DNA of 64,000 bases from Azolla caroliniana (lineage: Eukaryota > Plantae > Polypodiophyta): NCBI GenBank assembly GCA_043228905.1, contig JBHGNT010000003.1:25730001-25794000 (forward strand). The letters run 5' to 3'. This document shows positions 4,445 to 36,243 of the stretch, in pieces. The position numbers were made by a program, and so were the translations under genes. Within the stretch, counting starts at the first letter, position 1. Each line of letters opens with the position of its first letter. The notes under the pieces are model-generated. The model searched no databases and was not told where the DNA came from. It saw only the letters and a program-made list of their open reading frames with translations.

Positions 4445-5230
4445 TGTAACATTTTATCTTGGAACCTTCAAGGATTAGGTGTGAGTCGTTGTAATAGAGT
4501 AAATTGTAACTTGAATCAAGAACTATCTTTGTCTTCTATAGGTAGACTTGATATGCTATGTTTTCAAGAACACCATCTTAATTCGCGAAGAATGGTGTCG
4601 ATTAGAAACAATTTACTACGTGGTAGTTGGATTTACAAATGGGTTTCGGCTTTTGGACCCTTTGGTACTCAAGGTGGCCTTTGTATTGCTCTTAGAATAC
4701 AATGACAATTTCATGTGCAAGCTAAAGGAGTCTTGCACGGTGGTAGAGTTCAATATATGCTTATTCTTATTTTTGGAAAATTGATTGGTTTTTTGAATGT
4801 CTATGCTCCAAATTCTTCTACTGGAAGAATTCATTTGTGGAATATGTTTTTGCAAGATCTTCCTATGGCACAACATTGGTGTATGTGTGGTGATTGGAAC
4901 ATGATTGAAAGCCCTACTAATAGATTAGGTGGATCTTTTGTTACTATCTCGGGTTTGGAATTGCGTGAGTGGGAGAAACTAATTTTCCAATATGAAGTTA
5001 CTTATTTGTGGCATATACTTTCTCTCGCATGCATGATTCCTTGTTATATTCACGTTCCAATCGAAGAAGTGTTGCTCTCAATTTGTCCCAGAATAGATAG
5101 GTTTTACGCAAATTCTTTTTTTTGGGATCATGGGGGATATGTGGGTATTATATCTGGCACTTCGTTCTCTGATCATTCTTCGGTTCTGCTTAAATTTTGT
5201 ATGGACAGCTGTCAAGGACACGCCAACCGT
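4445..5230 (+). mobile_element. Degenerate LINE (L1-like) ORF2 endonuclease fragment
   Basis: APE-endonuclease motifs across frames: NILSWNLQGLG, LCFQEH, LNVYAPN, MCGDWNMIE, RIDRFY, FSDH; frameshifted. Confidence 0.85.
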
Positions 5231-5379
5231 AGACTCGGATGGAGCATGGCTGATGGAGCTACGATGGTGGTGTGGGGCCTGAAGCATAATCTCTTGAGAA
5301 GACTAGACTCGTTTAGTTGTTTGTATGTACATGATTTTGGCATAATCGGCGAGATGTTTGATGTGGAGTTGATGAAGTA

Positions 5380-5830
5380 GAATGTATGTTTTTGGATAAG
5401 GATGAGTGATGAGAGTGTTGGGGGCCGAAGCATATTCTCACGAGGAGATGAGGAAACAAGATTCATTGTATTGTTGTGTGTGAAAGATTATGGTGGTATT
5501 CGACGAGATGGTTAATGTGGACTTAATGAAATAGACTTTATGTTTTGGATAAGGATGAGTGATGATGGTGTGGAGGTTGAAGCATATTCTCATGAGGAGA
5601 TGAGGATTTAGACTCATTTTATTGTTTATGTGCGGGAATTTGGTGGTAATTGACGAGATGGTTGATGAGGACTTAACAAAGAAGTTTTTATGTTTTTAAA
5701 GGACGAGTGATGAGGTGTGGGGCTGAAGAATAAGCTTAGAAGGAGAGGAGGAAACTTGACTTAATTTGTTGTTGTATGTACAAGAATTTGGTGGTGATCC
5801 GGCGAGATGGTTGATGTGGAAAGAGGAAGC
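5380..5830 (+). repeat. Degenerate ~140-bp tandem repeat (3-4 copies)
   Basis: Recurring TTTTGGATAAGGATGAGTGATGA...GAAGCATATTCTCA.GAGGAGATGAGGA...GACGAGATGGTT.ATG.GGA. Confidence 0.6.
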
Positions 5831-6932
5831 ATAGTTGTTGAGTTTACAGTCACGAAGGTGAAATGTGGTTCTAACTTCTCTTAAAAAAGCACATAACATA
5901 GTTGATTGCCTTCGAATCCGAGATGCACATGCATGGAATACATTGTTATCTACCTTGAAAGCTTGTGGTAGTGTTCAGTTTTTTGGATAAAGATTATGTT
6001 GAACAAGAGCAAGTTGAAGAAGTATTGAAATGGTTCATAACTATGACCTGCGAGGGCTTGTTTCCGAATAGAGCTACTTTTGTTGTTGTCTATGGATATG
6101 GATAGCTTGCAATGTGTCAATGGAATTGCTTGAATTACTGGATTGTTTTCTTTGCTTTGGAGTACATAGATTTGTTTCCTCAACCATTGTCTTACACAAG
6201 ACGGGCTTGGGGAAAAAATACTTTGTATGTTGTAGCCATTATGACCTTTTTATATAACTAATGTAAGGATATTCTGTTTTGGAAAAAATATGACTAGGTT
6301 TGACTTGGATGCACATGTGCACAACATGATTAAAGAACAATGTCTTCACCGAGCTTACAATTCCCCTAATGAGTAGTAGCTCCCATTGAACTACACATCC
6401 ATAGAAAACCATAATGATAAATAAGAGTAACAAAGTTTTTTTAAATAATTCATTAAAAGGGCAATGCCAAAACTATTTTGAAATTTTAAAGGTTACAAAA
6501 TGCCCTTCATTTTCTCCCTCGATTGCATGAATGTAAATTTGTAACACTTGATATTGACCTTGACATTCTCATCCCATATTGTTGCTTTTGAAAACTGCAG
6601 TCAAGCATGGTTGAATTTTATCTTATCAAATATGGTGTCCTTCATTAGGTAACATTGGAGCCCATTAGAATGTCCTGAGCATAAAATTGTAAGAATTTTC
6701 CATTTTTTTAGGCCTTCCAATGTGTCATGACCCCTGTCCTAGATAATGAACATTAAAATTTGACCACTATGATAATAGATCTCAACGAAAAACAATTTAT
6801 TCCATAATTTAGTAATCACAACAAAATATAATCAGTCCTACATGTATTAACTATTGGGGGAATCCAATGTGCACATGGATATGCTAGACCACTTGAACAT
6901 TGGAATGACTCACTTACGCCTTTGGAATGGTT

Positions 6933-8781
6933 TCACCGCCATGTATTATGCATATACCACCCTTCGGTGTTGCGACGAAAGCGATGCTTATTTATTTGAG
7001 CATTTTGGAATGCACAACAAGCAATCACGTAAACCACGATGATCACAACTAACACGATCACACTTAGCAAGGCAATTTTCCTCCATGGTTGTTTCACATT
7101 GGCTAGGACACTAGCTCGACACGAGTCACAAGCGTAGCACAAATCAGTTAAACCATTGCTCCAACGTGAACAATCAGGTGAAGCTAAGCTATTGCTTGGA
7201 TTGGTCCACATGGTAGTGTTGTTTGGCTCGATCATTATTGTGAACCCACAAATTTCTGGTGGGATACAACATCCATGCTACACAAAACATATTATTCAAA
7301 TCAATGCACAAATTTGGCAATCACCCTCTTTTTATGCGAATTATTGCCTTTTAACATGACAAAAACTTCCAAGTTTTTTCTTTTCTGTGTATATCTTTGG
7401 TCTTTATGAATCATGATGCAAAATTAAATGATAAAGAATTGTGTAGAAAATAGGTGTCAAATGATGAACAAAGCATGCTTCGACATGTGAAATGGCCGGA
7501 AAAGTGACATATGAAGGGCTACTAGGTTGGGGCACAAACGATGATTCTTAATATTGATTCAAATTCTAGATACAAACTTTGTTCTTTTCTTTCGAGTTAG
7601 TTTAGGAGGCATACATCTCACAATGCATGGTAGCATTTGTCTTGTCTCACTCATTTAGTGATTCCTTGAACTTGCTTCACACATACACAATAATAGAAAT
7701 TGTTTTTTTTTTTTTTTTTTTTTTCAACATGGTAAAAAGTTTTTAAAATTTGGATATATTAAACATAACAAATTTGGTGGACATGCTTTTAAATTTTGGA
7801 TTTATTTAACATTACAAATTTGGTGTACATGGAATTAATGGTAGTAACAAATGTAATACATAGTCTCCTTTATAGATAGATTTCATTCCACAAAGTTTTC
7901 CTTATGTTCCTTGAAAATTTCTTAGGGTTTTTTTGTTGGGGCTCAAAACGTTTAGGGTTAGGGCTCAAAAACTAGTAGGGGCAAAAGGCTTTGGATATCT
8001 TTTAGGGTTAAAAAACCTTCAGTGTTCTACTTTGAGTTTCAAATAACTTTTAAGGTTGGGGGGCTCAAACACGTTTAAGGCTTAAAGGCTCAGAATATCT
8101 TTTACTTCGGGTTTCTAAAAACTAGTCTTAATGTTAGGCTTGGGCTACACGTATTGTTTTGGTTCTACCATCACACTTGGGTTTTTAAACCTAAGGGTAG
8201 GGCTAAATTTGGGATTTTTACACATACACTTGGTTTACAAGTTAATGCTATGTATTTTCAAATAAGGGTAGGGCCAAGTTTAGGATTTTTACCTGCAAAG
8301 ATGAGAGATCTATGGCATAAAAATTGGAGATACTTTTGACATCTTGGTTCACCTCTTTGCATATTTTTGTGTCCTGGATACAACTCTCAATCTTGGCCCA
8401 ACTCTTCGAATTCTCGACTTGTTCACGCAACCACCACGAGTAATCTTTCACCTCATAATTTGTTTGTCCAACCAAGTCCCTTGGTCCGTCTTTTGTCACG
8501 ATGAACGTAAACACAATAAATGAGAGAAGTAGCAAAATGATGAAAAACATAATGAAGAGGTAGATGTAGAGAAGCCACACTACACGATTGAAAGCACCAA
8601 GGCAACCAAGAAGAGAGATAACGAGGATGAAGAGGCCAAGGCCAATGATTGACCATTGGAGGAACTGCATACACTCGGTGCTTGGCCTCGTAGCTAGCCA
8701 TATCCCGCCTCCAATGAGAGGGATTGAAAGCAAAAATGTTGTGATGTTCACCACTCCCGTGATTATATTGCTAAGAGGCAT
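6933..8781 (-). CDS. Tetraspanin, 2 exons (8781-8293, 7277-6933)
   Basis: Plant tetraspanin motifs: LSIPLIGGGIWL, C..FLQW, three N-terminal TMs, and W.KI.SC. The GT-AG intron joins LQ to HGCCIPP (canonical GCCKPP). WSN...LCY.CDSCRA.VL and a fourth TM follow. Confidence 0.93.
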
Positions 8782-11174: not shown

Positions 11175-11401
11175 GATGCCACAATTTTTGTTGTTTGACC
11201 ACCTATCAGCAATATTGCCTAAAAGCATGTGGTAGCATTAGAGCTACATTAGCAGGCAATGAAATTCACAAGGAAATTGTACAAAAAGGTGTTGAAAGAG
11301 ATTATTTCATTGGCAATACATTAGTAGATATGTATGCTTAATGTGGGTCACTTGCCGAGGCATAGGTGGTATTTTACAGGCATTCAGTCAGGAATGGATC
11401 T
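11175..11401 (+). pseudogene. PPR (PLS-class) gene relic, left part, split by transposon
   Basis: Translates as LKACGSIRA...GNEIHKEIVQKGVERDYFIGNTLVDMYA*CGSLAEA*VVF...VRN with in-frame stops; continues at 20729. Confidence 0.85.
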
Positions 11402-11437
11402 AACACGTTCGCGTTCACAAGTGGAAGGATTGCGCAT
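11402..11437 (+). repeat. Left terminal inverted repeat
   Basis: AACACGTTCGCGTTCACAAGTGGAAGGATTGCGCAT is the reverse complement of 20693-20728 (35/36). Confidence 0.95.
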
Positions 11438-11768
11438 TCCACTTGTAGAATCTTCTTAAAACGAAGCAAATACACCCTCTCTACAATAATTGGATGCACT
11501 AGTAACACATGTTCCTCAACTTGATAAGAATTTGCAAATATAAAAATACATGATAGATCTACGAGTGGAGATCATTAGAAATCATGCAAGTTTAGACATG
11601 TTGATAAGTTAATGTATCTAAATAAAGTTCAACTATGGCTCAATATGGCACTATTGTGCGACAAGGGAAACACTAACTTAAAGACTTATATTAATTAGGT
11701 AGGTTTTACAAAATTATGAGGTGTACTTGTATCCATACTAATAAAATGAGATATAATTTATACTTTGA

Positions 11769-12055
11769 CCCATACGTGCATGTATGTAATTGTCGAAAAT
11801 GTAGGATAGTGCACATTAGGATAAGTGATTGGAATAACTAACTTATTAAAGTATTCAATACTTATATTAAAAGTTGATCTAATCTATTCCTCAGTTTGTT
11901 CATATGGGATCAAACCATATGTGTATATAATTGTGCACAATGTAAGGCAGTGAACTTTAGGATAATGTCGTGGAAATAACAAACCTATTAGGCTTTCATA
12001 CCTGTATTTAAAATTGATCTACTCTATTGCTTAGGTGATTCACACAAGATCAAAC
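11769..12055 (+). repeat. Degenerate ~145-bp tandem duplication inside the transposon
   Basis: CCATA.GTG.AT...TAATTGT...AATGTA.G..AGTG.AC.TTAGGATAA...TTGATCTA.TCTATT...GATCAAA occurs twice. Confidence 0.55.
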
Positions 12056-12448
12056 TCCGAACGATAACGCAACTGGAACCATTATCAACACACTACACAA
12101 TCTAAGCAGCAATGGAATAGAAACATAATAGTTTTAACAATATAAGACAAAGATCCATAATAACAACATGGACAGTCATGGCAATAATTATAGGGCCATG
12201 TTCTGTTAAGGTTAGCTTGGACCAAAATCAGCCTCCATTTAAGCTAGTTCATGTTTCTCCATAAGTTTGGTAGTCAGCTATGCACGCGGTGAAACCAATA
12301 TCATAAATCTACTAATGAGGTATATAAAAATAAAATTGAAACATATAGATGATTATAAAGAATAGAATCCACTAGGTAAAACCCAAAATTTGTATTAATA
12401 ATGTGAAATCTTAACAAATCGTTAGTGTCATATTCTTTATAGAGTCTA

Positions 12449-15400
12449 TTACATAGCAATCAATTCATCTACGTCATTTTCTTCATCATCTTGTGTAGAA
12501 CTGTCTTCGGCTATACGTGCATTGGTTTCCCCTGTTAGCCGGGCCAACGAAATATCTTCTATAAGCTCATCATCAAGCTCTATTAGCTCTCCCGGTTCGC
12601 CGGCTAACGGAGGAATAGGCTCTCGCGAAGCGGGTTGAAACCTTTCTGTATTGGCGAGGTTCTTTGCACCGACCTCCTCATCCTGGTCTGGGTACTCCCA
12701 CAAAGCCTTAATCCGCATATTAATAAATATAACTTGGTCCTCGTCCTTCTCCAATGCAACTGTATTCCTAAACAGCTTCAATGCACATGCTGACGTAGTT
12801 CCTATGATGTAAGTAACAAGAAGATTTAGTTGTCAAACGAAAAAAGTGATTGGTTATCTCAAGATCGTTACCCTAGTTCGAGGAATACCTGTGCCAGAAA
12901 AGAGATCTAATATCCAGTCTCCTTCGACAGAAAACATCTCGATCAAGCGCATCATAAGTCGTTGAGGTTTTTGGTATGGGTTGACAAGTCCCCGTTCTGT
13001 CGTGGTGACATGTCGCAATTTCCGAGTCACTGCTGGATATACCAACAGATTTGAACCTCCCACTTCATTAGAATGCTCTTTGATTCTCTGTTTTTTAATT
13101 TCATCGAAGTAGCCAACCGTTATGTATTCAATGGCATTAACGAACCGAAAAGTTGGCCCTCTATTTACATTGGTCTTGATCCTATAAAAAAGAATTCATA
13201 GAGTTAAAAATAGATTCAACAACCTTAAGAATTGCAATATAATGAAAGACACCTATAAATAATCCTTACCATGCAAGGTTCTCGATGCCATGGCAACGAG
13301 ATCTCAAAGCTTGAGCTACCGAGTACCCTTGGTCCATACTATGAAAGACAACTATTCGCCACAAGGATGCGGTCGTTAGCTCAGCGAAATCCTTGACCAT
13401 CTTCTCCAATTGTTTAAACCTAAACGGTTCATCGTCGTATGATGACCCAGCCATTCGAAATCCGTAAGGAATATCCGCAATCATTAGCGTATATTCCTTC
13501 TTTGGCACCTTCTGGATCAAGTCGATGACATCACCGCAAACCACATTGTAGTAAAGATCTCTCGTAATATCTTTCTTGTGGCTAAATTTTTTAAACGAGC
13601 CATCTTCCTCCATTTCGTACGCCTTGACTAAGCGACGATCCTTTTCTTTTCTGGCTCGCTCGAGATGTGCAAGGAAGGATGTAGGGAAATCGTGTATATC
13701 CTTAACTTCTCCTTGTTTCTTGCCTCGACACGGTTTCTAATAGAAGCAATAGGACATCAGGTATTATTATACAAGCTCTACATATGATGAAAGGGTAATG
13801 AAAAAATATCAATACTAACCCAATCCTTGAATGCAATAAAATACTCTGATAACGCCTTATACGAAGACGTTAGAGGATAATCCTCGGTCACTTGTTCCCA
13901 AGTTATACATCCAAGTTGTTTCATCATTACTTCTTGGATCTTCATGTACACCTTATGACTGTAAAATTAGAAATCAAGATTAGAACTTTGAATTACACCA
14001 GATAGACTACAATTTCAGTATTTGAAAGACTTACTTATTGAACTCGGTGACCATTTCTTCAAGGCTTAAATCTTTCGCCACAACCCTTGACAAAACGGAC
14101 ACAAGAAGCTGCTCGTCCTTAATACCTTGCATCGCTCTCCATAGAGACAGCTTCATGTCGTCTGCCGCTTCTTCAATTGTCAAGTCAATTTTCTTGGCGG
14201 CTTGTGACTTTAATTCTAGTTGAGGGTCAACCCTACATTTCTTTTGTCGTTGACCCTTTACCTCCTTATTCTCCCACATTGAGAAGATTTGATCTTGGAG
14301 GTCCCATACTTCTCCATCTCTAAACGCCAATTGAAACCAAGATTCATACTTTCGAAGACCATCGGACCTAACATTATCATCTACCACAATGCCGACTTCA
14401 TGCAGACATTGACGTCGAAGGCCTGGATGTAACTTCACACCAAACTTTTGTTTCACATCTAAATACTCGTGGTGGAAGAACCGGATACGCTCAATAGACG
14501 ACATTTTCTGCCTATAGTCATTATCATTATTATGGTCCCATGCCAACAGCTTAGCCTCTTCGGTTGTGAGCCCAACATATATTTTGCACTCGGCATACTT
14601 GAAGAAGAAAGTGGTTGGATGTTCTCTTACAAGTTGTCGACGTGCCTCTGCTGAATGCGATCCACCAATGACAAAATAATTATATTGATCATGCTTTCTG
14701 ATATCAAAATCTTCAATGGTTTCACATTCTTCAGGATCCACCATAACAATAAAAGGCACCACTGTGGCATGAGGATTAATTTTCATTTTCTTCTTGAGAT
14801 TTTGAACATGCATGCGATGAGGCTCTCTAATCTCAAGTGGTCTTCGACCTGTTTTTTCATCAATAGGGGGCCGATGGATGTGTGTTATAGGCAAATTAAA
14901 TACTTGCCCTTTCCTGACCAGCTTCCGTTGCATTAACTCTCTTCTTATTTTATTCTGCTCGGATGACAAAACACCCGAGGCCAGCTCGGCTCCTGGCGTC
15001 CCCTTATTATCCTCTTCTTCATTTTCACTTGTCGAATCCGTATCCGACATTTTCGTTGTCTTCTTCTTGGCTGGTCTTGACTGGACTTTGGATACCTTTT
15101 TAGTGGCCTTCAAGTGGGAGGGCTCTTCATCTCGTAGAGTTACATGGCCTTGTATATAAGGCCTCAAGGTAACAATCAGGTTTTGTGAGTTATCAAGTGC
15201 TTTTTTGAACACTTCAGGCCCACAAGATTCCTTTACTAAAAGATCTTCTGAAAGGAACACCCTGCGTACCCCCTTGGAGCACTCTATCATTACCAGTATG
15301 TTGGCCGAATCTGCATCTTCGTAGTCAAATCGTAGAATTCGGCCATACATAAATGGAGTTTCTTTTCCTAGCTGCCCCTCACCCTTCTTCTTTGCTGTAT

Positions 15401-16767
15401 ACAATACGACTTTTTTCTTTGAGTCAACATATTGCATACACCATTCCTTGTCCGTTAGATCTCGGTCAGGAAGGTCTTCGCCTCCAGTAGCGGCGACAAT
15501 TTTCTTTTGGCTTACATCACTATGGGGCTGAGATTTTGTCTCTTCGTTAAAGAGAAGCTTTTTTCCTCTCTTCATGGTCTCCGGAGTTACCTTGGTCTGG
15601 GCTTCGATTGGAGAACCTTGTATGCGAAGCTTAATTTTCTTCACGGGTCGGTCTGACAGATTCTCAAACGACCTATTTAAGAAAGTATATGCAAAAACAT
15701 AAGTTAGACAGTTACGTAGATTGAAGTTGTTATTATAATGAAGAACAGTTTCTAGGAGCAGTAACATATTCAAAAATCTATTCTAGGCAGGGCTATTCAA
15801 CCTAGAAAATATATATCGTAATAAGTAAAATGGGTTATATATTCTTTTAAATAGTAGGTATGACTTACATAGATTCTAAACCTATATTGATGAGAATTTG
15901 CCATAGTGAATGCAATTTGTAGATCATTTTCTACTATTTTAAGCTAAAGTAGGTCAAAAAACACCTATAATTAGAGCATGTATTTGTTTAGAAGTAAGTA
16001 AACTCAAAATAAAAAGACTGATTTTGACAGACAATTTGATAACATTTCCACCCCGTAAACGATTTTTCTCTCTCAAAGGCTACACTTTAAACACGAACTC
16101 GATACGGCGTATCGAGTTCGTGTTTAAAGTGTAGGTTTTAAACACGAACTCGATACGCCGTATCGAGTTCATGTTTAAAATTCAAACTTTAAACACGAAC
16201 TCGATACGCCGTATCGAGTTCGTGTTTAAAACCTATACTTTAAACACGAACTCGATACGGCGTATCGAGTTCGTGTTTAAAACCTACCCTTTAAACACGA
16301 ACTCGATACGGCGTATCGAGTTCGTGTTTAAAACCTACACTATGACTACGAACTCGATACGCCGTATCGAGTTCGTGTTTAAAACCTATACTTTAAACAC
16401 GAACTCGATACGACGTATCGAGTTCGTGTTTAAAACCTACACTTTAAACACGAACTCGATACGGCGTATCGAGTTCGTGTTTAAAACCTACACCATGAAC
16501 ACGAACTCGATACGCCGTATCGAGTTCATGTTTAAAACCTATACTTTAAACACGAACTCGATACGGCGTATCGAGTTCATGTATACAATACAAATATTTA
16601 TACACGAACTCGATACGGCGTATCGAGTTCGTGTATAAATATTTGTATTGTATACATGAACTCGATACGCCGTATCGAGTTCTTGGGAAACGAAACATAT
16701 TTACAAAAATGTCCACAGTGTCAGAGGCCTACCTGGACTCCTCGCGCTCGACTCTCTTGGAAGACAT
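12449..16767 (-). CDS. ParB-like domain + beta-class N4-C/N6-A DNA methyltransferase fusion, 6 exons (16767-16733, 15672-14035, 13958-13820, 13736-13270, 13181-12889, 12801-12449), ~974 aa
   Basis: Five GT-AG introns join in frame (2925 nt, no internal stop). The MTase has GDVIDLI...LMIADIPYG (motif IV), WIK...EYI, YQKPQRLMMRLIEMFS.EGDWILDLFSGTGTTSACALKLFRNTVALEKD (motif I FxGxG). The ParB-like region reads LPITHIHRP...IRE...HVQNLKKKM...PFIVMV...YFVIGGSHSAEARRQL. Confidence 0.85.
16080..16682. repeat. Array of 12 palindromic units (51-52 bp period) in intron 1 of the MTase gene
   Basis: Unit TTTAAACACGAACTCGATACG-N-CGTATCGAGTTCGTGTTTAAA plus an 8-bp spacer. Centres at 16107, 16158, 16209, 16260, 16311, 16362, 16413, 16464, 16515, 16566, 16618 and 16670. 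Confidence 0.97.
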
Positions 16768-16819
16768 GGTTGATCGTGTTGTGTGGAGGCGGAGATCGCG
16801 CTTTCGTGCTTTGTGCCTT

Positions 16820-16884
16820 GAGTGCTCTGTGTGCTCTGTGTGCTCTGTGTGCTCTGAGTGCTCTGTACGCTCTGTACGCTCTGG
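16820..16884 (+). repeat. 9-bp minisatellite (TGTGCTCTG-like) in the predicted 5' UTR of the MTase gene
   Basis: About 7 tandem GTGCTCTGT / ACGCTCTGT units. Confidence 0.8.
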
Positions 16885-16907
16885 TGAGTGAAATATGATG
16901 AGGTCTT

Positions 16908-16920
16908 CCTATTTATAGGG
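16908..16920 (-). promoter_or_regulatory. Putative TATA box for the ParB-MTase gene
   Basis: Minus strand reads CCCTATAAATAGG, about 140 bp upstream of the ATG at 16767. Confidence 0.55.
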
Positions 16921-17590
16921 ATTGAACCCATGGTTAAAGTAACCATAGTCATCTTAACCAATGTTGGTAACTTTGAGGATAGTTAGTTTGTAACCATAGT
17001 CACATTAACTATAGTAACTTATGATTGTATTAATGATTACAAAGGCAAACTAATATATTGATGAATCTTTTATACTCATAACAACCTACAATCACTTCAA
17101 AGGTTATGAAGGAGACAATGATAGAGGTTCATGAATGTACCAATGATTGATTACTAAAAGCAAAAATTTTTATGACTCTCAATAGTTATGTATTAAAGAT
17201 GTGGGCATGAATTAACTAATGATTGATAAGTCTAACATTTAAAATGGTGAGCATTAAAGAATCAATGAGTGAGACGTTCTATATCAAAATGGGTGTCATT
17301 AATTAGCCAATGATTTTAACATTAATCCAACATATTCAACGCTTGTTAATGATTAGTTTTATATTTTACTTGATTTAACATCATTTAGATCTAGTTTATA
17401 TAATGATTGATAATTTAAGTTAAATTACTTTATTAAAAATAATTTTTAGATGTATTGTATTTTAATAGAATATTACATAATATAGACATTCTATTGATTT
17501 GGCTTTTGTTTAGAGAGAAGTTTATGTTTAGGGAGGAGTATATGGTTAGAGAGGAGTATAACTTAGAGAGCCCTATCTAGACCTTAAGCC

Positions 17591-19531
17591 ATGAGTGAAG
17601 ATTCACCGTTCTCGATTGAAGAATATTGTTTGTCATCAGACCCATCGTTTTCTACTGAAGAGTATTGTTTATCAACAGAGTCACCATATTCGATTGAAGA
17701 ATATTGTCTTTCGACCGACTCACCATATTCTATCGAAGAATATTGTCTGAGCTCATCTACAGGGAATGCAAATAATGACACATGTGAAGAGTTCTCTATT
17801 GAAGAATACGATATTAATAAAGATACCGGGAATGAAGGAAGTGCCCAGGAAACATTGAATAACATTGGCGATGGTCAGAACAGAGAATTAGACTGTAACA
17901 AGGTTACACCAACCTCTATGCAGGAAGAGAAATCTGGGAGCCCTATGCATATTAGAAGAATCCCACGAAGAATTCGTCTGGCTAGATTTAGCTTGGTGAC
18001 ATCAGATAAACAGATTGGATTTGATGTCAACAAAATATGTTGTGCCCGTGGTTGTATGTCTATGATTGGAAAATCAAAGTTGCGAGAATTAAGGCGATAC
18101 TATTTTTCGATGACCGGTGATGAGCAAGACACTTACCTCGGATCACATATGCAACTAGTATCTGACAAATGTACGGGGATCAAAGTATCATTCGAGTATT
18201 ATATCTTCCATGCGCAACAGATATGTAGAGTTGCATTCAAAATTGTGTTATGTGTTAGTAACATGCGGCTACATAGAGTACAACAACGTCTACTTAGCGG
18301 GGATCAGATGCTCAATTGTAAAGAGGTTCCAAGTATGAAAGGTGCAATTGGAAGACTAGCTATTGGCTGGATGAAAACTTACTTTCAGTTAAATTGTGAA
18401 GTAATGCCCACTACAGGTAGGATGCATCTTTCTGATAATTATACCCGTCGGGAAGTTTATGATGTCTATCGATCTGAAATGCTGGGCTCACGTAATAAGT
18501 CTATCACCTATAGCCAATTCACAAGATTATGGAGAGCTCGGTTTTCAAATGTTATTATTCCTCGTAAAGTACGTATGGGTTATTGCTCCATTTGTGCAAA
18601 TCTTAAAAGTTTGGCTAAAGGTGCAAAGACATCAATGGAAAAGGATACGAGTAAGAAGTTACTACAAGAGCATCGTGAGGCACAATCCTTAGAACGAAGG
18701 AAGGCGATGCATCATAGAGAGAAGTGTTTGAAGAGGCCTGAACAATACATGTGCTTAATGATAGATGGCATGGACCAGAAGAAGACATGCTTGCCGCATA
18801 TGCGGAGGCTCCCCAAAGATGTCAATGATGAGTGCCTTGTTCAAATGCACTTGGTGGGATGCTTGGCTTATAATAGGTCTGTTCGACCTCACGTCTTCAT
18901 TACTTACCCCAATGTTCACAATGACCCTAACCTAACAGTTACAGTGATTCACCGAGTTTTGATGTCTTGGGGACAACCTTTCCCCCCTGTTCTATACATT
19001 CAATTGGACAATACTGCTAGAGAGAACAAAAATTCAACTGTATTTGGCTATCTAAGTATGTTGGTCAACCTAGAATTGTTTAGGAAAGTGAAAGTCAATT
19101 TCCTTTTGGTTGGCCACACACATGACCATATAGATCAGATGTTTAGCACATTCTCCAGACAGTTGTCTCGGCATGATGCTTTCACTTTACCTAAACTATT
19201 TGATGTCATTTGTGATGCATATACACCACGCCCAAAAGTGTTACACTTGAAGGAGGTATATGACTTTAAGAGATATATATTAGATGGGGGTGGTGGGAAT
19301 GTTAAAGTGCTTGCTCAGTTAAACAATATAAGTTTCAATCACATTTTTTTGATAAAGAAAAATGGAATAAGTGGTTCTACACTTTTGTATGCTAAACAAT
19401 ATTCATCTTCTACAACATGGGAACCTGAAGGTGGTTGCCAGTTATTACTTTGTATGCCGAGTACATTGTCCATGGAGCTAAGCAAATGCCAATTGAGAAG
19501 AAAGGACAGTTGCAGAGCGACTTGGTATTAG
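17591..19531 (+). CDS. DDD transposase, Sola-like (N-terminal and catalytic part)
   Basis: Cys cluster CSIC...H, then catalytic-type motifs CLMIDGMDQ, LYIQLDNTARENKN and FLLVGHTHDHIDQMFS; lies within TIRs. Confidence 0.85.
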   Translation: MSEDSPFSIEEYCLSSDPSFSTEEYCLSTESPYSIEEYCLSTDSPYSIEEYCLSSSTGNANNDTCEEFSIEEYDINKDTGNEGSAQETLNNIGDGQNRELDCNKVTPTSMQEEKSGSPMHIRRIPRRIRLARFSLVTSDKQIGFDVNKICCARGCMSMIGKSKLRELRRYYFSMTGDEQDTYLGSHMQLVSDKCTGIKVSFEYYIFHAQQICRVAFKIVLCVSNMRLHRVQQRLLSGDQMLNCKEVPSMKGAIGRLAIGWMKTYFQLNCEVMPTTGRMHLSDNYTRREVYDVYRSEMLGSRNKSITYSQFTRLWRARFSNVIIPRKVRMGYCSICANLKSLAKGAKTSMEKDTSKKLLQEHREAQSLERRKAMHHREKCLKRPEQYMCLMIDGMDQKKTCLPHMRRLPKDVNDECLVQMHLVGCLAYNRSVRPHVFITYPNVHNDPNLTVTVIHRVLMSWGQPFPPVLYIQLDNTARENKNSTVFGYLSMLVNLELFRKVKVNFLLVGHTHDHIDQMFSTFSRQLSRHDAFTLPKLFDVICDAYTPRPKVLHLKEVYDFKRYILDGGGGNVKVLAQLNNISFNHIFLIKKNGISGSTLLYAKQYSSSTTWEPEGGCQLLLCMPSTLSMELSKCQLRRKDSCRATWY

Positions 19532-20370
19532 AACAAAAACGGTCATGGCTCCAAGCCTTAGAAGAAAAAAGAAAACATATTGAGGCCGCCAAGAAATATG
19601 CCACACAACAAGACACGTCATGGTGGGATGTATTTTATAGTGATCAGAAAGAAATTATAGACAATTGTGTATCTGTTGATAATTGGAATTTGGAAACGCC
19701 ATTCACATGGTCGCTGCAACATGATCGCGTAAATAGAAGTCCGGAGCGACTAGTAAATGCGATTAATGACAGCTTGGTCCATCCACAACAAAGAGACATT
19801 TATGTGGGACCAAGGATGACCAAAGCAGCCGAAGCTAGATGGCAAGGAAATTTGCATGAGCTCACCGCGGGGATGTTGATTGCAACGCCGGCTGATGAGA
19901 ACTCACATGGCCACCAATTTTGGGTTGGTAAAATTCTAGAAGTGCTAATGCATGAAATAGATAACACGATCAAGTCTATAAATGTTCATTGGTACAACAC
20001 TAGAAGTGCAAATGCTTTTACAGGTAAGTATACATTGGAGATGATTGAATGCCAAACAAGAAGGGGAGGTAGGAAGAGGAAGCGAAACATTCGTAACACC
20101 TCGACCCTTGATATCTCTGATGTGGATATCATCGTGTACGACTTCACACTTACAAAAGCCGGACGATTAAGGAAGTCAACAATAGATATAATAAAAGAAA
20201 AATTACCAGGTCTACAAGGTGGCTCGAGTCAAAGGCAAACGAGATCTGCTACATATAATCTAGAGTCAAACCATTTGGTTTATGACGAAGATAATGCACT
20301 GATTGGTACATCCGAGGATGATGAGGAGGAATCGTCATTGTATATTAGTTATAGTAGTGATTCTCCGTAA
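19435..20370 (+). CDS. Probable frameshifted C-terminal part of the transposase (possible BAH/Tudor-like beta domain, NLS, acidic tail)
   Basis: 311-codon ORF overlapping the transposase end. One added base near 19461 would fuse ...LLCMP to EYIVHGAKQMP.... Contains FWVGKILEV...VHWY and RRGGRKRKR. Confidence 0.6.
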   Translation: MPVITLYAEYIVHGAKQMPIEKKGQLQSDLVLEQKRSWLQALEEKRKHIEAAKKYATQQDTSWWDVFYSDQKEIIDNCVSVDNWNLETPFTWSLQHDRVNRSPERLVNAINDSLVHPQQRDIYVGPRMTKAAEARWQGNLHELTAGMLIATPADENSHGHQFWVGKILEVLMHEIDNTIKSINVHWYNTRSANAFTGKYTLEMIECQTRRGGRKRKRNIRNTSTLDISDVDIIVYDFTLTKAGRLRKSTIDIIKEKLPGLQGGSSQRQTRSATYNLESNHLVYDEDNALIGTSEDDEEESSLYISYSSDSP

Positions 20371-20692
20371 AGGAGTGATCATGAATGTATATTTGGCTAT
20401 TAAGTGTAACTACATTCCGCTTGTAACAAATCGAGTAATATAAAATCATGTGTTTTGAATTCTTATGATTTCCCAAAAATCGTTTCTTATAAAATAACAT
20501 TGGTTGTAAAGTTTGTGATATAAATTGAGAATGTATGTTTTTGAAATTCGTCTTTTTTTAGTTACTTCTAAATCACGAAAATAGTGGATTTTTAACCTTT
20601 TTCATAGTATGTTTGAACTTGTATGATACTGGTATCAATGTGTTTTGTAAAATCATTGAAAAACCCCTAAAATTTCACTTATCCTTCCATTT

Positions 20693-20728
20693 ATGCGCGA
20701 TCCTTCCACTTGTGAACGCGAACGTGTT
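20693..20728 (+). repeat. Right terminal inverted repeat
   Basis: ATGCGCGATCCTTCCACTTGTGAACGCGAACGTGTT followed by the ATCT target duplication. Confidence 0.95.
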
Positions 20729-20790
20729 ATCTCTTGGAATGCACTTATTGCAGGATATGCGGAGAATGGGAAATTTGAGGAAGTGCACTA
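20729..20790 (+). pseudogene. PPR relic, right part
   Basis: ISWNALIAGYAENGKFEEV, the direct continuation of the motif broken at 11401. Confidence 0.85.
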
Positions 20791-21374
20791 TCAAGTCTAT
20801 CAAACGAAGGATTCATGGCTAGCCATTGTCTTACACAAGACGAGCTTGATAAGGATAGTTGCGTCCTTTCCATCTATTTTATATTTTGTAGCTAATATGC
20901 TTTTTAAAACTAATGGAAGGATATGTTCTTTTGGTCCAGGATATGTTTCCCTTGTTCTGGATTGAAAATCTCCATTCTTAGGACTAATAGTCGGCGACGG
21001 TTCGCCGAACCAAACTGCGTCTTCGATCGCTCATTCTTGTGGGCATGAGCATGGATCCTCAAAATGTAGAAGTTATGTATATACGTATATGATATATATA
21101 CATATGTATGGCTTATTAAAGGAAAAAGAAATGGAAAGAGAGAGAGAGAGAGAGGGAGAGAGGAAAAATGCGACGACATTTCAAGAATAGTGTTGAAACA
21201 TGTTTCTGATGTAACTTTGTCCTCAGAACTCCATTTTTATGATTTTTGGCTCGTTGCGAATCTCGTTCAGAGGGCTTTCCAAGGATTATTTGGACGTTAT
21301 GTTTCATTATAATTACAAGAAGATACAAGCAAAAATGTCATCGTCTCAGGTTAGTTCTCTCAATCTCTATTAGG

Positions 21375-24300
21375 ATGGCTGACACAACAATAGGAAGTGA
21401 GTTGATGATTGTTGATGGATGTGGTAGTGATGATGGTTATGAAAATTACAAGAGGCAAAAGTGTATTGATTCTACAAAACATGAGAAAACATCATATGCT
21501 GCTATTCTTGGTGGGAAATATGTTATTGGAGATGATTATGATATTGACAGTCATCGTGATTTTGTTAAGGCTTTGCTTTCCGATTTTATGGAAAAAAAAG
21601 AGAAAGATGCTAAAGATTGTGTGGAGGAGGATGTTGTTGAGGTGGTGATGGAGACCAACTCTATGTTAGCAACTTTTGACAGGTTCTATGATCGTGGTGT
21701 TATTTTGTATTTCACTAGTAAACTTCCTTTGGTATCATGGATTAAGTAGTGGTTGAATTCATTCATAATGCCTAATTGTGTTGAGGATGTGTATGTGGGT
21801 CCAAGAGGTTTCTATGATGTAGTTTTTCGATTGTCAAACCACTGTACAGCTTTGATGGGAAAGGTACCAATCTTTTTTGATAGAAGATTAGTGCATGTGA
21901 TGGAATGGGTTCCAGCGGTGGATTATAAAGATTTATTAAAACAACAATGTCCAATTTGGGTGACCGTTGATTGTAGTAACTCATTCTTTTGGGATTTACT
22001 ACCAGGATTGATGTCCCAAATTGGTAACATTTTGGTTGCTCCTCATGTTAATTCGTTGAACAAATGTAGATATTGCATGTTATGGGATACAAGTTGTAAA
22101 CTTCCAAGATGGTTGAGTATCGATACATCTCGATTTGGTTGATTTCGTTTTAAGCTTCAATGGGAAACTTTTGCAGGACATTGTTTTAAATGTGGTAAAT
22201 TGGGGCATTTTATGGCTGAAAGCCAATATCATGGTGAACTATCCCCAAAAAATAATGTCAAAGGGAAAAACAAGGAAGATGTTGAGAAGGATATTGTTTT
22301 GATATGGTCATGGATGAGGGAATATCTCATGGGTTAGAGCGAGATCCTAAAGTTCATGGTCATGTTAGAGGTGTTGGGGAGGAGAATGGAGTATGTAATA
22401 ATGATGGCCCAAATGTTGAAGATAGAGAGTGGCATCAAGTGAAGCATGAGATAAAAGGGAAGGGTGTTGCCATACAAAGGGGGAAAAAATACTTATTGTA
22501 CGACATTACCAAAAGATAATTTGAGATTGAAGGAGGGGTTTAAGAAAAATCCTTGGCAAAAACAAGTGCGAAATCAGATATTGTCCAACCAATTACAATT
22601 CGATTCTTCAAGAAGGGTGGTACGACCTCAATTAAATCAAGGACTTCATTCTCGTGGAGCCAGACAACAAAACCCTAATATTGGTGGAGGGGATGCAGTA
22701 CACACAAATCCTTATGCAGCTCTTGAACAAGTAGTTAGTACATTCATGAATACACTTGCTCATAAAGAGCAAGTTCTTACCAAAGGTGTTAAATGAAAGT
22801 TGTATCATGGAATGTGAGAGGGGCATCTTCTCCTCATAAGAAATATATATTATGGAAAACTTTATTTGATAAAGATTGGGATGTTTTATGTGCAATTGAA
22901 CATAAGTGTCATGATTTAGTAGGATCTATGTTACATTTGCGTGGATATTCCACATATTATCCAAGACAATTATCACATTATTACTCAAGGGTTGTCATGA
23001 TTATTTGTGATTCGTTTTGTCCACATATAGTCTATAATGATCCATATGGACGTTTTTTGGTGATGGAAGTCAAGTATTTTGAGGATTTGATATGGTTGGT
23101 TGGAATCTATGCACCTAATAATGCTAATCAACGCATTGAGTTATGGTCTTCAATGTATCCACGGTTATTAGTGGGACATGTTGGTTTGTTAATGGGTGAT
23201 TTTAATATGTGTGTTGATGCTTCACAATCTACTTTGCGATTCTCAGTGATGGATTCTCCTGAGCAAGCAGTTTGGGACAAATTGGCATCAGAGGTTTTGA
23301 AGTATCAAGATGAGGTTGGGTTTACATTTCAGTCTATGCAATACAAAGAAACATGGAGTAGGTTAGATAGAATGTATGTTATGCATGATGAGTCCTTTTT
23401 GCCAGAGATGCTTAATATGTCAATTATGCAAGAGGTTGTGACATCAGATCATTTTCCCATATGTTTTGAGTTTAATAAACATGGGGTAGATATGTACAAA
23501 ACATTGCTTCAACGAGTTCCTTTGAGGTTTAATTCTTCTTTATTATTACATTCTTTATTTGATGCCTATATGCAACAAAATTTTGGCATGTTTTCAGAAC
23601 AAGTTATTTCAAAAGGATGGCATGCATGGGATACAACACTACAAAACATCAATGATATTCATCGTATGTATGGTATGACTAATGCTAAAAGACGTAGGAA
23701 ATTGATTGATAAGTTTTCATATATTCTTATGTGATGCAATGTACTATTGATGAATAATCCACATGATGAAGAGCTTTTGGATGTTCAAGTTCAAGTACAT
23801 GACATTGTGAAGAATTTGTCTTGTCAAAGTTATCAACATACAAGACTACGCCAATTAAAGGAGGGATTTATAGATAATCAATCACAATCTCATATGTTTT
23901 TTCAAGGATTAAGACCACCATATGCTCGTTCAAATGTGGTACAAATTAAGATAGGGGATGCCATTGTTGTAGACCCAGTCAAGGTTATTGAGTTATGTAT
24001 TACTCATTTTAAGAATTTGATTGGGCCAGAGTTAATTATTAATGAGGATGTCTTGAAAGCACGACAAGAGTTTTATAACGTAATTGGGAGTGTTGTGAAT
24101 ACAAATATTTGTCAAGAATTGGATGTTGATTTTGAAGAAGCTGAGGTGGAAAATGTATTGTTACACCTTCCAAATGGTAAAAGCCCTAGCTCGGATGGTG
24201 TTACAAATGAAGTTTTTAAGAAGTATGCTAGCATGCTTAAGAGTTCATTCACACAAATGTTTCAACGATGTTGGGATTATGGTTTCATGCCTGAGAGCTA

Positions 24301-26745
24301 GAAGGTGGGGTTAATCAAATTGATACCAAAGGTACCATCTCCGGAGTCATTTCATCAATGGAGGCCTATTTCATTGATGGGAGGGTTGTACAAAGTGTTT
24401 GCAAATATATTATCCAACAAACTTAAGAAGTTCTTACCTCAACTTATTCATCCATCTCAATATGGTTTTATTACAGGTAAAAATATATTGCATAATGTTT
24501 TGAATGTTCAAATGGCGACTAATTATACTCGACATACACATCAAGAAATGGTTATGGTGCAATTAGATTTGGAAAAAGCATATGATCATGCTAATTGGTC
24601 TTTCCTCTCAGGTGTGATGTATAATATGGGGTTTGGTCCTCGTATGTGTTGACTTATCTTTTTGTTAGGGCAAAATGCAACCTCCCGTGTGATGCTTAAT
24701 GGTGGAGTCACTCCGAAAGAGTTTCTTACTAGATTCGTGTGGCAAGGATGTCCACTAAGCCCATTGTTATTTGATATTGTTACACATCCTTTGTTAGTAA
24801 TGTTGTCACATCTTGCGACCAATGGTGATATTGTGGGTTTGCATCTTCCTTCTGGTGGACAATTGGTGGCACAAGCATTGACAGATGATTCTTTTATGTT
24901 TTTACAAGCCTCAAAAGAAAATCTTAAAAGGAGTATGCAAGTTTGGGATCAATTTGTTTTGGCTTCAAGGTTGTATATAAATTGGAGGAAGTCTCGCCTT
25001 ATTTCTTGTACCGAGAGTGATTTGGAATGTTTGGGATGGCGAGGGTCAATGATTACACGAGGTTCAATTTATCGACATTTGGGTTATCCATTAGGCATTG
25101 ATGTCACAAATGTTCAATTGATTGATTGGATTGGTAGTAAATTGAGGGACAAATTTATGTATTGGAAGCCTCAATTATGGCCCTTTCATGCATGACTCAA
25201 AGTGGTGCAATGTATCTTGATACCCATGTTATTATATTTGTTGCCTTTACTTTCTTGGACTAAGAAGGCATTACAAAGCATGTTACAACCTATTATTCGG
25301 TTCATGTTGTGGCGGAAGGGAGAAATGATGGGAGTTACATGGATTTCATGGGACCATTTGGCTACTCTTAAAAGGTTAGGTGGTGCAGCAATATTGGATT
25401 TGGAAAGGCATTTGATGGCTCGTAGATTTACATTATTATGAGATATATGTCAACAAGATCAACCATGGATATCTATGATGCAATATTTTATTGAGCATGA
25501 AGGATTGGTGCATGGGAAAACAAAGATTTAAGCATCATGGTGGTCACTACTAAATGGAAGTATTCCTCTAAAGATTCGACATTCTGTATGTGGACAACAT
25601 TTGGTAAGATCGTGGCAAGATGCATTATCTCTTATTGAATGGGGACCATCAAGTGATCAAGAATATTGTAATTCATTACAAAACGAATTGCTTGTTTATT
25701 CTCGAGTGTTGTTTTGGCATGGGAAAGAGAAGTTGAGATCTCAATTCAATTGTTTATTTTGATTGGGAATTGTACATTTAGAAGATATGGTTGATAATGA
25801 ATCTCAAAGGTTGTCGGATTTTGAAGATGCCAAGAGATGGTTATGTATTCCCCCAAATTATGGATTTATTTGGGAGAAATTACATGATAAACCATTGTTG
25901 CAAGGATCTTTGCCATTGAAAACCAATTTTGCACCTTGGGTAGATTGGCGGTTACAAGATGACACACGCTTGTTACAGGTCACTACAAATATATTGTATT
26001 ATAATGCGATGATATTATTATCTTGGCTATCTCCTAAAGCAACGAATGTGTGGAATGTATATAAGTTAGATGTAAGGTGGTGGAAAATATTACAACGTGG
26101 TTGGCATTCCCATCTACCATTTCGTGCAAAGGTATTAATATGGAGAGTCATGATTGGTGGGCTCCCATTAGGTTCGGCCTTAAAGCGACGAGGACTAGGG
26201 TCTATCACTTGTTTCTTTTGCACCGTTCCATTGGAGGATAATACACATAGGTTCATTAAATGTCCTATAGCATGTACCATTTGGAAGTACTTATCGGACA
26301 TTTGACAAGTTTTACCTGTTGTTGTTTGTGACCTCAACAATGGGTTTTTTCTTAATATGTTCAAAATGGATCAAATGATGAGATGGAGATATTGTTCCAA
26401 TTTTTACGTTATTGGGGTCTACAACACAATTGGAATATACGTAATGCTTTAATGTTTGATAATAGACATGGGGTGAAAGCCTATATAAAGAAGCTTAAAG
26501 GTATTCTTATGTGGAAATTTTGGATGTTAGAGCATGTGGGGATCATTTCCTCAAATGCATATTCAGGTTTTTTAGTAGCATTACAGAACGTCCCTCTCCC
26601 TACATAGGCATATGATAGGTAGAGGAGACTAAGAAGTGTTGTAACTAAGTGGATTTTACATACAATTAATATAATTGTGTGCTTTTACCCAAAAACAAAA
26701 AGAAAAAAAAGAAATGGAAAGAAAGAAAGGAAAATAAAAAACAAA
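21375..26745 (+). mobile_element. Near full-length degenerate L1-type LINE (ORF1, then ORF2 with EN, RT and zf-RVT; A-rich tail)
   Basis: ORF1 fragments have PIWV and the zinc knuckle CFKCGKLGHF. ORF2 from 22793 reads MKVVSWNVRG, GIYAPN, GDFN, SRLDR, SDHFP, WRPISL, QYGF, LDLEKAYDH, QGCPLSPLLF, LTDDS and CFFC...HRFIKCP. Many stops; A-rich 3' end. Confidence 0.93.
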
Positions 26746-27271: not shown

Positions 27272-29424
27272 ATGCTTCTGCTCAAGCCTTCCTCCATCGC
27301 TTCTGCACACCAAAGCTTGTATTCACATTCCCCTATACTCCTTCGCCTTAGCCAGAAAAACTGCACTGTTTCTACGTCTTCTTCTTCTTCGCCATCCTCC
27401 ATTTCACCTCTGATCGTTTCAATGCGTAGTGGCATTTCTATGGCTGCAATATTTTCATCCTCGACTTCTTCTGATTTCCAAGAAGATAAGCAAACTCTAA
27501 CAGGCGTAACTTTTCAGCCTTTTGTGGAGATACAAGATCATCTCGTCATGGTTCCGTCCTCTTCTTCTGTGTCTTTAGCTCGCCAGAACTTTAGCGAGTC
27601 GTGCGAATCTGCTCTTAACGAACAGATCAAGTATGTTCTCTCTTTACGTTCTCTTCTCCGTTGATTTTTACATTTGTTTTAATGAAAAATCGCCGAAGTA
27701 CTCTGAAGTTCTGCTTTATTTCTCCCAAATAAACACACCTGGTCAAGAGTATTAATATTTGCTGTTCGAACAAATTTTATAAACCAAAGTTTCTCTCTTT
27801 ATACTACATTCATGCATTAAAATGTTAAGAGATACCTTCATTTAGCATCCGTTTCTTTCTACAGTATTTTGATTTTAGGTTTTTAAAGTTTTTTGTATTT
27901 TCACTGTTCCATTTTATTGCAAAATCTACATTTCCCCCCTACATTTGCAACCTGAGTTTCTCGCTTTATGTTTCACTCTTTCAATCAAATGCCTCTAAAA
28001 GTGCAATTCATTTTCACAGTATTGAGTACAATGCGTCTTATTTTTACCATAATCTTTTTGCTTATTTCGATCGCGACAATGTTGGCCTTCCTGGATTTGC
28101 AAAGTGAGTAACATTGCTTTGTTTTCATACATTTCTATTTTTTTCCTCTTTGTCGTACCATGTATGATAATGTTTTACTAACCAATTCCAGGTTCTTCAA
28201 GGAATCTAGTGACGAAGAAAGAGAACACGCCAAGAAGATAATGAAATATCAGGTCTATATGTTTAAAATATTTTAATAGAATGTGAATATTTGCCTTTAA
28301 TGTCTTCGTATAATTTCTGGTTTTATATTTAATCCCTTAGTATTTGTTATTACTCTCCTGCCTGAATATCACTATTTTTGGCTTATATCATGCATGTGGT
28401 TGATGTTTGAGTAAATCATTGCTGTTTGATGTTATTATTTGTTTGTCTTTAGTGTCTGAATTCAATTTTCAGCATTTGTACCTAACTGAATGCTGATAAT
28501 TGATGTCACCTTAGTGTGTGTGGAATATTTGAGTGGAATATGGTGATAACTCTGATGGTCAATGTCACCAACCCTACTTACTCTGTGAGTTTATTTGCGC
28601 CCATAAGTGGATGCTTATGTCTGAATAGAATACCACAACAATAGTCCATGGATCTTATATTCTTATAGTGTTTTGTGTCATGTCTATAGCTAATAGATGT
28701 ATTTCGTTTCTTTGCAGAATACGAGGGGAGGTAAGGTTAAGTTAAACAACATTAGCTTTCCAACCATAAGGGAATTTGATGATGCAGAGAAGGGAGTTGC
28801 CCTTAGTGGTAAGCTTGAAATCTTGGTTATTTCTCTCCATTTCTTTTTTATTTTTCACACTTCAAAATTTTCATTGGTGCTCACGTTCGTGATTGTATGT
28901 GTGTTAGCAATGGAGCTCACCTTAGCAATGGAGAAGCTTGTGAACAAGAAGTTACTTAAGCTTCATAAGGTATGCATTCTTTTTATGAGGTAGTACCTCC
29001 TATTTGTGTGTTCAGCTTAGTACTTGATCTTGTCTGAAGTAGTACAGAATTCTTTGAATAATCTTTGAAGTTGCAATGCCTGTTCACAAATAGGTTGCTG
29101 AGGTGGCTGGTGATCCACAGTTAGCTGATTTTGTTAAAGTAGAGCTTTTAAAGCCTCAGGTTATATATTTACTGATAATCTTGTACTGATAATGTTTATA
29201 TATTTTTTGTTTGCTAATAATGAACTCGTGTTACAGGTTGATGATATAAAGAAGATCTCAAGTTACGTTTCCCAACTCAGAAGAATCGGGAAAGGGCATG
29301 GTAAGTTGATGCCATGGCAATGAATGATTAAGTGTTCATTTTTTTTGTCCTAGAATTTAAGGTTTTTATTATACTGTCTTTTAATGTTTCAGGAGTGTAT
29401 CATTTTGATCTCATGTTGCTCTGA
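27272..29424 (+). CDS. FER: Plastid ferritin, 8 exons
   Basis: Ser-rich transit peptide, then [25 protein letters not shown]...[75 protein letters not shown]. Seven GT-AG introns, as in plant ferritins. Confidence 0.93.
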
Positions 29425-35927: not shown

Positions 35928-36243
35928 GACATAGAGAAAAATATGTATGTAACTAACTATATACACTAGACTACACTATACTATTTACTAGTACTACCAC
36001 TATTATCTATCTCTAAGACTAATGGGTTTTTACTCCACTTCACATGGTCATTTATATATACTCTTCTATTAATAGAGTTCCCATTTGTATGTATGTATGT
36101 ATGTATGTATGTATGTATCGCATGTGCGTATATGCATGTATGTAGAATTTAGCTAACAAAACTCCAAGACAATTGTCTCACAATTATTTGAGTTGATTCA
36201 CTTAAGTTCAAAAATAAAGAGGGATGGCATTTCTTGCTAATAC

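Follow-up and report, generated by a model that had tools for sequence, protein, structure and literature searches.

The stretch of Azolla caroliniana DNA analysed here (contig JBHGNT010000003.1, positions 25,730,001 to 25,794,000 of the forward strand, 64,000 nucleotides; hereafter "the window") carries on its minus strand a gene of 974 codons, in which a central ParB/Noc-like fold is followed by a C-terminal beta-class amino-methyltransferase domain. The gene lies inside a whole DNA transposon, apparently of the Sola type, where it diverges from a transposase gene. The methyltransferase thus forms the C-terminal end of a fusion with a ParB-like part, which travels as transposon cargo, and is not a stand-alone host gene. 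An earlier reading of the window from its letters alone (the original prediction) had recognized an intact, intron-split methyltransferase domain at 12449–13736. The three exons of that interval are genuine, but they make up only the rear third of the protein, as the gene has three further exons upstream and starts with an ATG at 16767 (Table 1).

The gene was searched exon by exon, with phases and stop codons checked for each exon. The last three exons join, as predicted, through GT-AG introns of 88 and 87 nt; their phases fit, and internal stops are absent from every exon of the 12449–13736 interval. The three exons upstream of 13736 (139, 1,638 and 35 nt) bring the full gene (16767–12449) to six exons and five introns. 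Motif IV, within ADIPYG (~13478–13461) in exon 4, precedes the NPYQKP segment and the motif I sequence WILDLFSGT in exon 5, and the intron at 12888–12802 interrupts the second glycine codon of FSGTG. Both the order of the motifs and the intron inside the S-adenosylmethionine (SAM)-binding loop are therefore as originally described.

Relatives at five other loci (L002, L004, L005, L013 and L015) share the intron sites, with identical codon positions, phases and GT/AG ends. The intron sequences themselves are merely 49–63 per cent alike between the window gene and these relatives, and synonymous sites are near saturation. Because intron positions and phases have been kept while intron sequences have diverged, we rejected chance splicing as an explanation of the junctions, and the splice model is supported by evolutionary conservation rather than by RNA. 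Bacterial contamination was also rejected, given the spliceosomal introns, the flanking plant genes and the target duplication inside a pseudogene of the pentatricopeptide repeat (PPR) type. An open reading frame (ORF) of 155 amino acids (aa) at 16171–16638, together with ORFs of 110 and 115 aa, was rejected as a set of separate genes, as these are translated repeat and pieces of exons.

Table 1. Features of the transposon and its two genes, in window positions (TIR, terminal inverted repeat).
Feature	Positions	Strand	Description
Whole DNA transposon, apparently Sola type, probably Sola1	11402..20728		9,327 bp; TIRs and target duplication; same termini in L002
Left target-site duplication	11398..11401	+	ATCT
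Left TIR	11402..11437	+	36 bp, 35/36 identical to right TIR; starts AACAC, as in L002, L005 and L035
ParB-methyltransferase gene, exon 6	12449..12801	-	Last part of SAM-binding loop (G|TT), acidic residue of motif II (ALEKD), acidic tail, stop codon
Exon 5	12889..13181	-	NPYQKP segment, motif I DLFSGT; PF01555 match over cut-off
Exon 4	13270..13736	-	Linker, start of methyltransferase domain, catalytic motif IV DIPY (13475-13464)
Exon 3	13820..13958	-	Helical linker, 46 codons, conserved
Exon 2	14035..15672	-	N-terminal region, acidic/basic linker, predicted ParB/Srx-fold domain (~14930-14505; GGSH replaces GxxR), helical region of DNA-binding type (~14540-14037)
Exon 1	16733..16767	-	35-nt start exon, MSSKRVEREES; counterpart in L013 equal in length and phase, with matching sequence
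Palindrome array	16080..16682		12 spaced palindromes, core TCGATAC-N3-GTATCGA (17 bp), 51-bp period; lies between both genes, within intron 1 of the ParB-methyltransferase gene
DUF7869 DDD-type transposase	17591..20370	+	Diverges from methyltransferase gene; frameshift at ~19459-19468 relative to the single 890-aa ORF of L005
Right TIR	20693..20728	-	
Right target-site duplication	20729..20732	+	ATCT

The transposase matches DUF7869 (E = 1e-51) and conserves DGMDQ, QLDN and GHTHD. Its DDD-type motifs and the 4-bp target duplication point to a Sola-type element, probably of the Sola1 subgroup. Sola1 elements prefer AWWT as a target (PMC3845634), and the duplicated ATCT fits three of these four positions, at one site only and with chimeric flanks in the metagenome loci. 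Removing the element restores a continuous, decayed PPR-like stretch, the empty site being a PPR motif with stops and a frameshift. The ParB-methyltransferase gene of the window copy is intact; the transposase is frameshifted once, and for this reason the copy is probably non-autonomous. In each of three DNA runs (two from the best-matching organism and one from a second organism), 4,856–7,060 contigs aligned to 5.9 kb, mostly at 90–99 per cent identity; there are thus many diverged copies, contig numbers not being a copy number. The decayed PPR-like gene is visible at ~11200–11401 and 20729–20800, and RNA contigs of other PPR genes match its left flank. Two short repeats lie near the starts of the transposon genes: a 39-bp repeat at the transposase N-terminus (17612–17746) that encodes SIEEYCLS units, and a 9-bp repeat (16822–16883) upstream of the methyltransferase start, with a similar repeat at the equivalent place in L002.

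The identification of the domain as a beta-class amino-methyltransferase holds at the levels of both profile and fold. Exon 5 alone scores 31 bits against the Pfam N6_N4_Mtase profile (PF01555; cut-off 26.7 bits; E = 3e-7), and relatives with the full domain match this profile at E-values of 8e-18 to 2e-14. The fold, for which the original prediction had proposed a structural comparison, was deduced from a model of a natural Ginkgo homologue (P0037), standing in for the window protein. The domain model of P0037 (predicted local distance difference test [pLDDT] score 88) superposes on CcrM with Z = 25.0 and a root-mean-square deviation (rmsd) of 2.4 over 216 residues, as a permuted Rossmann fold.

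DIPY is the commonest form of motif IV in the family and no lesion of the window copy. Across the family, the aspartate (D34) and the second proline (P36) are invariant and the aromatic residue is usually kept. In most relatives I, L, A, V or F stands in place of the first proline, giving DAPY, DLPY, DFPY and DIPH besides DIPY, and the marine relatives have DPPY. DLPY also occurs in unfused matches of the HPTQKP type. The first proline of motif IV is thought to work through its backbone carbonyl, which any residue can supply. The FxGxG loop and the motif II acid are conserved as well. A comparison of substitution rates among copies, likewise proposed at the outset, gave nonsynonymous rates (dN) of 0.03–0.15 and synonymous rates (dS) from 1.6 to saturated for the window exons against L004, L013 and L015, with the motif I exon among the most constrained (dN ~0.03). 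These rates indicate strong purifying selection on the exons and suggest that the protein has been kept across long-separated families. The original description of the enzyme as probably active is reasonable as a prediction, because the catalytic aspartate, second proline and tyrosine are kept and purifying selection is strong.

The original prediction held that the target base, N4-methylcytosine (4mC) or N6-methyladenine (6mA), cannot be read from sequence; sequence and fold nevertheless lean to adenine. The family profile matches N6-adenine enzymes best (M1.HpyAVI at E = 4e-20; CcrM, MboIIA and RsrI at 1e-16 to 9e-16), with N4-cytosine enzymes much lower (the rotifer enzyme at E = 4e-7, PvuII at 4e-5). 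The fold of the P0037 model gives the same order, with Z = 25.0 for CcrM versus 20.2 for rotifer N4CMT and 19.3 for PvuII. Motif IV opens with aspartate in nearly all relatives and never with serine; the SPPY motif of eukaryotic N4-cytosine enzymes, present as TSPPY in Marchantia DN4MT1, is absent here, with DIPY in its place. The balance thus leans to N6-adenine over N4-cytosine by roughly three to one, with cytosine a possible target given the known exceptions.

The rear half of exon 2 resembles ParB proteins in predicted structure (pLDDT 80). Foldseek matches it to Noc and ParB at E = 1e-5, and VIA-align gives Z-scores of 10.3 for PadC, 9.5 for KorB and 8.4 for pNOB8 ParB; the structural match spans the ParB/Srx fold and the helical DNA-binding region that follows. 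The ParB-like exon has no Pfam match, and the ParB-like region has no relative among the viral contigs searched. The language-model look-alikes of the protein encoded at 14037–14990 are fungal DUF3723 proteins (score 0.96), which may point to a broader ParB-like group among eukaryotes.

The spaced palindrome of intron 1 is CG-rich and occurs nowhere in the remaining 54.7 kb of the window. The same type is found in L002, L004, L011 and L013 (7–9 copies in L002, L004 and L013), and a TCGATGC variant in L003, L005 and Ceratopteris. Riccia has 10–11 copies of TGTATGC-N2-GCATACA, Adiantum has 4–5 copies of GGATTC-N2-GAATCC, and L035 and L036 contain a 17-bp near-palindrome. Shuffled loci contain at most 1–2 copies of any palindrome. 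Most families carry a palindrome of their own. In Ceratopteris the palindrome array, with a 31-bp period, is placed in a later intron of the ParB-methyltransferase gene (L001:11791–12064), a copy that has frameshifts and a stop. In Riccia, a second DUF7869 element (L037:18074–22091) adjoins the first and has its own set of nine TCCATGA-N3-TCATGGA palindromes.

The ParB-methyltransferase protein has named homologues in Ceratopteris richardii (71 per cent along the ParB-like region), Ginkgo, two Adiantum species, Riccia sorocarpa and Chara braunii. A DUF7869 transposase again stands head-to-head with the gene in the metagenome loci L002, L003, L005 and L007, as well as in Adiantum (L008), Riccia (L037) and the intronless marine loci L035 and L036; no transposase was seen in the flanking DNA examined around the Ceratopteris and Chara genes. 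The SAM-loop intron is missing in Riccia, Adiantum and Chara, so introns were gained stepwise following an old acquisition. Identity to phage methyltransferases is only ~26 per cent, and prokaryotic ancestry of the domain is likely but old. Because of this low identity, and because Chara, Riccia, Ginkgo and intronless marine elements have the domain too, the plant appears to have received it with the transposon and not freshly from bacteria; on the same grounds we rejected a recent direct transfer. Of the originally proposed horizontally acquired, now intron-bearing enzyme, the introns and the likely prokaryotic ancestry stand, but the acquisition is old and its product is transposon-borne instead of a free host gene.

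The intronless marine-type relatives (L035:630–9803 and L036, both on metagenome contigs, the latter labelled marine) encode 981 and 1059 aa with DPPY, and L035 contains TAACCCTAA telomere-like repeats. Used as a query, the 981-aa relative found its own cluster only. Ginkgo has at least four annotated paralogues (P0027, P0033, P0037 and P0038), with DIPH or DISQ as motif IV where annotated. Marchantia DN4MT1 was absent among the named matches (about a dozen, from 30 looked up out of 150). Orthology with DN4MT1 was rejected, and no sign of kinship was found.

Taking together the established anatomy, folds, selection and co-occurrence with palindromes, we propose, with a probability of about 0.5, that the protein is a self-marking accessory of the transposon. 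The ParB-like part would bind the element palindrome, as ParB binds parS, and would thereby bring the methyltransferase to copies of its own element family. There the enzyme would write an amino-methyl mark on or near the promoter region shared by the two genes, 6mA being likelier than 4mC. The most likely benefit would be that both divergent genes stay expressible against host silencing by 5-methylcytosine (5mC), a role comparable to that of VANC proteins, though carried out through the writing of a mark. Mobilizing the window copy itself would take transposase supplied by a different copy, while its accessory gene may still function. Self-modification has already been proposed for algal elements (PMC12477816; bioRxiv 2025.02.11.637652), and VANC offers a precedent (PMC5735166).

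Several observations weigh against this proposal. The region is ParB-like, yet lacks one defining feature of cytidine triphosphate (CTP) clamps: the arginine of the CTP-binding motif GxxR is replaced in all relatives compared, where GG(S/N/G/T/C)H precedes S, T, C or Y (GGSHS in the window protein), and clamp loading and sliding are doubtful because this arginine is missing. The association with palindromes is also uneven. L005, with both genes intact, holds one palindrome only, no enriched palindrome was found in L009 or near the Chara gene in L038, and an unrelated palindromic tandem array lies outside the element at 36739–37431. In the window copy, moreover, six bases (AACACG) are common to the array flanks and the terminal repeat. 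Depletion of CpG did not set the element apart from other repeats in the window (ratios of 0.68–1.05 in the element, 0.44 in a long interspersed nuclear element [LINE] and 1.27 in a copia element), and there was no sign of protection from 5mC. Finally, RNA junction reads, by which the original prediction had proposed to check the splicing, gave no support in the one probable RNA run, whose contigs matched flanking PPR sequence only.

Among the other explanations, two are equally improbable, though they survive best. In the first, the protein targets its own element in the same way but writes 4mC, which would occupy the CG sites of the element and exclude host 5mC. The beta class does include 4mC writers, rotifer N4CMT and PvuII still align with the modelled fold, and the window palindrome is rich in CG; no base in Marchantia was found with both 4mC and 5mC (bioRxiv 2021.02.12.428880). 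The aspartate-first motif IV of nearly all relatives, so different from the TSPPY of DN4MT1, argues for adenine instead, as do the profile scores, which favour N6-adenine enzymes by 13 orders of magnitude.

In the second, the mark regulates transposition itself, by acting on the binding of transposase, on the pairing of ends or on timing; the transposase, and not the ParB-like part, may then be what the palindromes serve as sites for. Dam methylation regulates the transposition of IS10 and Tn5 in this manner. The methyltransferase gene accompanies the transposase in most loci long enough to show both, and the bases shared by array flanks and terminal repeat would fit a transposase site; so would the second DUF7869 element of Riccia, which has palindromes of its own and no methyltransferase within the DNA examined. 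However, the terminal repeats of the window element, L002 and L005 lack the conserved palindrome core, the ends carrying a different motif, TGGAAGGAT, and L035 keeps the two apart, with one palindrome type in its terminal-repeat sequence and another that is internal only.

Somewhat less credible still is a methyltransferase domain that is weak, dead or directed at RNA, and that is retained for binding or scaffolding. The missing first proline of motif IV speaks for it, it has a parallel in the methyltransferases of DIRS1 retrotransposons, which are thought inactive (PMC4738411), and the fold class includes METTL3 and METTL14. Such a loss of function is hard to square with the invariant D34 and P36, the usually kept aromatic residue, the conserved FxGxG loop and motif II acid, the strong constraint on the motif I exon, and the occurrence of DLPY in unfused matches as well. 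Least probable of all is broad genome methylation in a restricted cell type such as sperm, by a drive factor or a gene domesticated by the host, in the manner of Marchantia DN4MT1: that enzyme is a precedent, and the named land-plant and charophyte hosts (Chara, Riccia, ferns and Ginkgo) all have flagellated sperm, but the gene sits inside a TIR element with a target duplication and many diverged copies, it is fused to a binder of the sequence-specific type, no kinship to DN4MT1 was found, and the hosts sampled are a biased set.

Enzyme-made 6mA or 4mC in land-plant DNA is disputed outside Marchantia sperm. For seeking such a mark, the family offers an enzyme and a target site, both as candidates, along with many genomic copies, which makes the question directly testable. 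The self-marking idea, hitherto only proposed for algal elements, becomes testable in workable plants, through the broken copy in Ceratopteris and the relatives in Riccia. We advance only tentatively, and as rather less probable than the proposal for the protein itself, the wider claim that ferns, Ginkgo, liverworts and stoneworts harbour a high-copy transposon family with an active, palindrome-guided 6mA (or 4mC) writer, acting as a self-marking anti-silencing system. If it is true, land plants would have a defined enzymatic source of DNA methylation other than 5mC; should readers and palindromes turn out to match in pairs, they would make up a natural set of site-directed DNA methyltransferases.

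Outside the transposon, the window contains host genes at 523–2253, 6933–8781, 27272–27664, 33558–35966 and 49328–49711. They include a PLAC8/DUF2985 protein and a tetraspanin and, as we presume from their sequences, a ferritin-like first exon and GDSL-lipase-like exons. The palindromic array outside the element lies near the latter; it has a 48-bp period and 14 copies, with a long palindrome centred on ATCGAT, and no transposase was seen alongside it. Broken LINE-like sequences, together with a copia-like element that has 136-bp repeats, occupy 21246–26364, 4715–5380, 43758–44192 and 58732–62226.

Among the closest known systems is Sola1-1_Ec32 of the brown alga Ectocarpus, which carries a gene for a ParB-like protein with an N4/N6 methyltransferase opposite its transposase and has been proposed to bind and modify its own element (PMC12477816). 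In both elements a single protein of ~1,000 aa (1104 there, 974 here) is encoded on the strand opposite a Sola-type transposase. The algal element is 21.5 kb long, whereas that of Azolla is 9.3 kb, with five introns in the gene and a 12-unit palindrome array; homology of the two proteins is putative, from their architecture, and function is predicted in both. In Bostrychia, the Plavaka genes PAG2/PAG3 combine a PF01555 methylase with a ParB-like protein next to tandem inverted-repeat arrays, and self-modification has again been proposed (bioRxiv 2025.02.11.637652). There, the transposase is of the EnSpm/Plavaka type, and the methylase is fused to SET and the ParB-like protein to a 2-oxoglutarate oxygenase, in separate genes.

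Among characterized enzymes, the bacterial beta-class N6-adenine methyltransferases CcrM, M.BceJIV, M.MboIIA, M.RsrI and M1.HpyAVI share the order of motif IV before motif I, align in fold (Z = 20.6–25.0, rmsd 2.4–2.8) and include the best profile matches. They are only ~20–26 per cent identical to the window family, which differs from them in its replaced first proline of motif IV, spliceosomal introns, ParB-like fusion and eukaryotic transposon carrier. Marchantia DN4MT1 and bdelloid rotifer N4CMT are likewise eukaryotic beta-class amino-methyltransferases of prokaryotic origin. Unlike the Azolla protein, they are 4mC writers encoded by host genes, with no sign of membership in the same family, and N4CMT scores far below the N6-adenine enzymes against the window family. 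A helix-turn-helix (HTH) of ParB type is also fused to a eukaryotic amino-methyltransferase in the chlorophyte-type Dam family, which belongs to Group 2, the M.EcoKI/M.TaqI type (PMC4738411), whereas the window enzyme is circularly permuted and joined to an entire ParB-like region.

ParB, Noc and KorB have, as here, an N-terminal ParB/Srx fold followed by a helical region, with palindromes of 14–17 bp nearby. The window protein differs in its missing GxxR arginine and in having no ParA, and its site binding is predicted only from co-occurrence. Arabidopsis VANC exerts sequence-specific anti-silencing through tandem motifs in non-coding parts of VANDAL elements (PMC5735166); it too is encoded as an accessory of its transposon, and its target motifs are likewise specific to the family and arranged in tandem. 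VANDAL elements are, however, Mutator-like, and VANC, which has not been described as a ParB protein or methyltransferase, causes loss of methylation, whereas anti-silencing by the Azolla protein is conjectural. The literature searched, which left most subscription journals outside, contains no report of such an element in land plants. The Azolla gene is thus a land-plant member of a kind already published for algae, with a predicted function.

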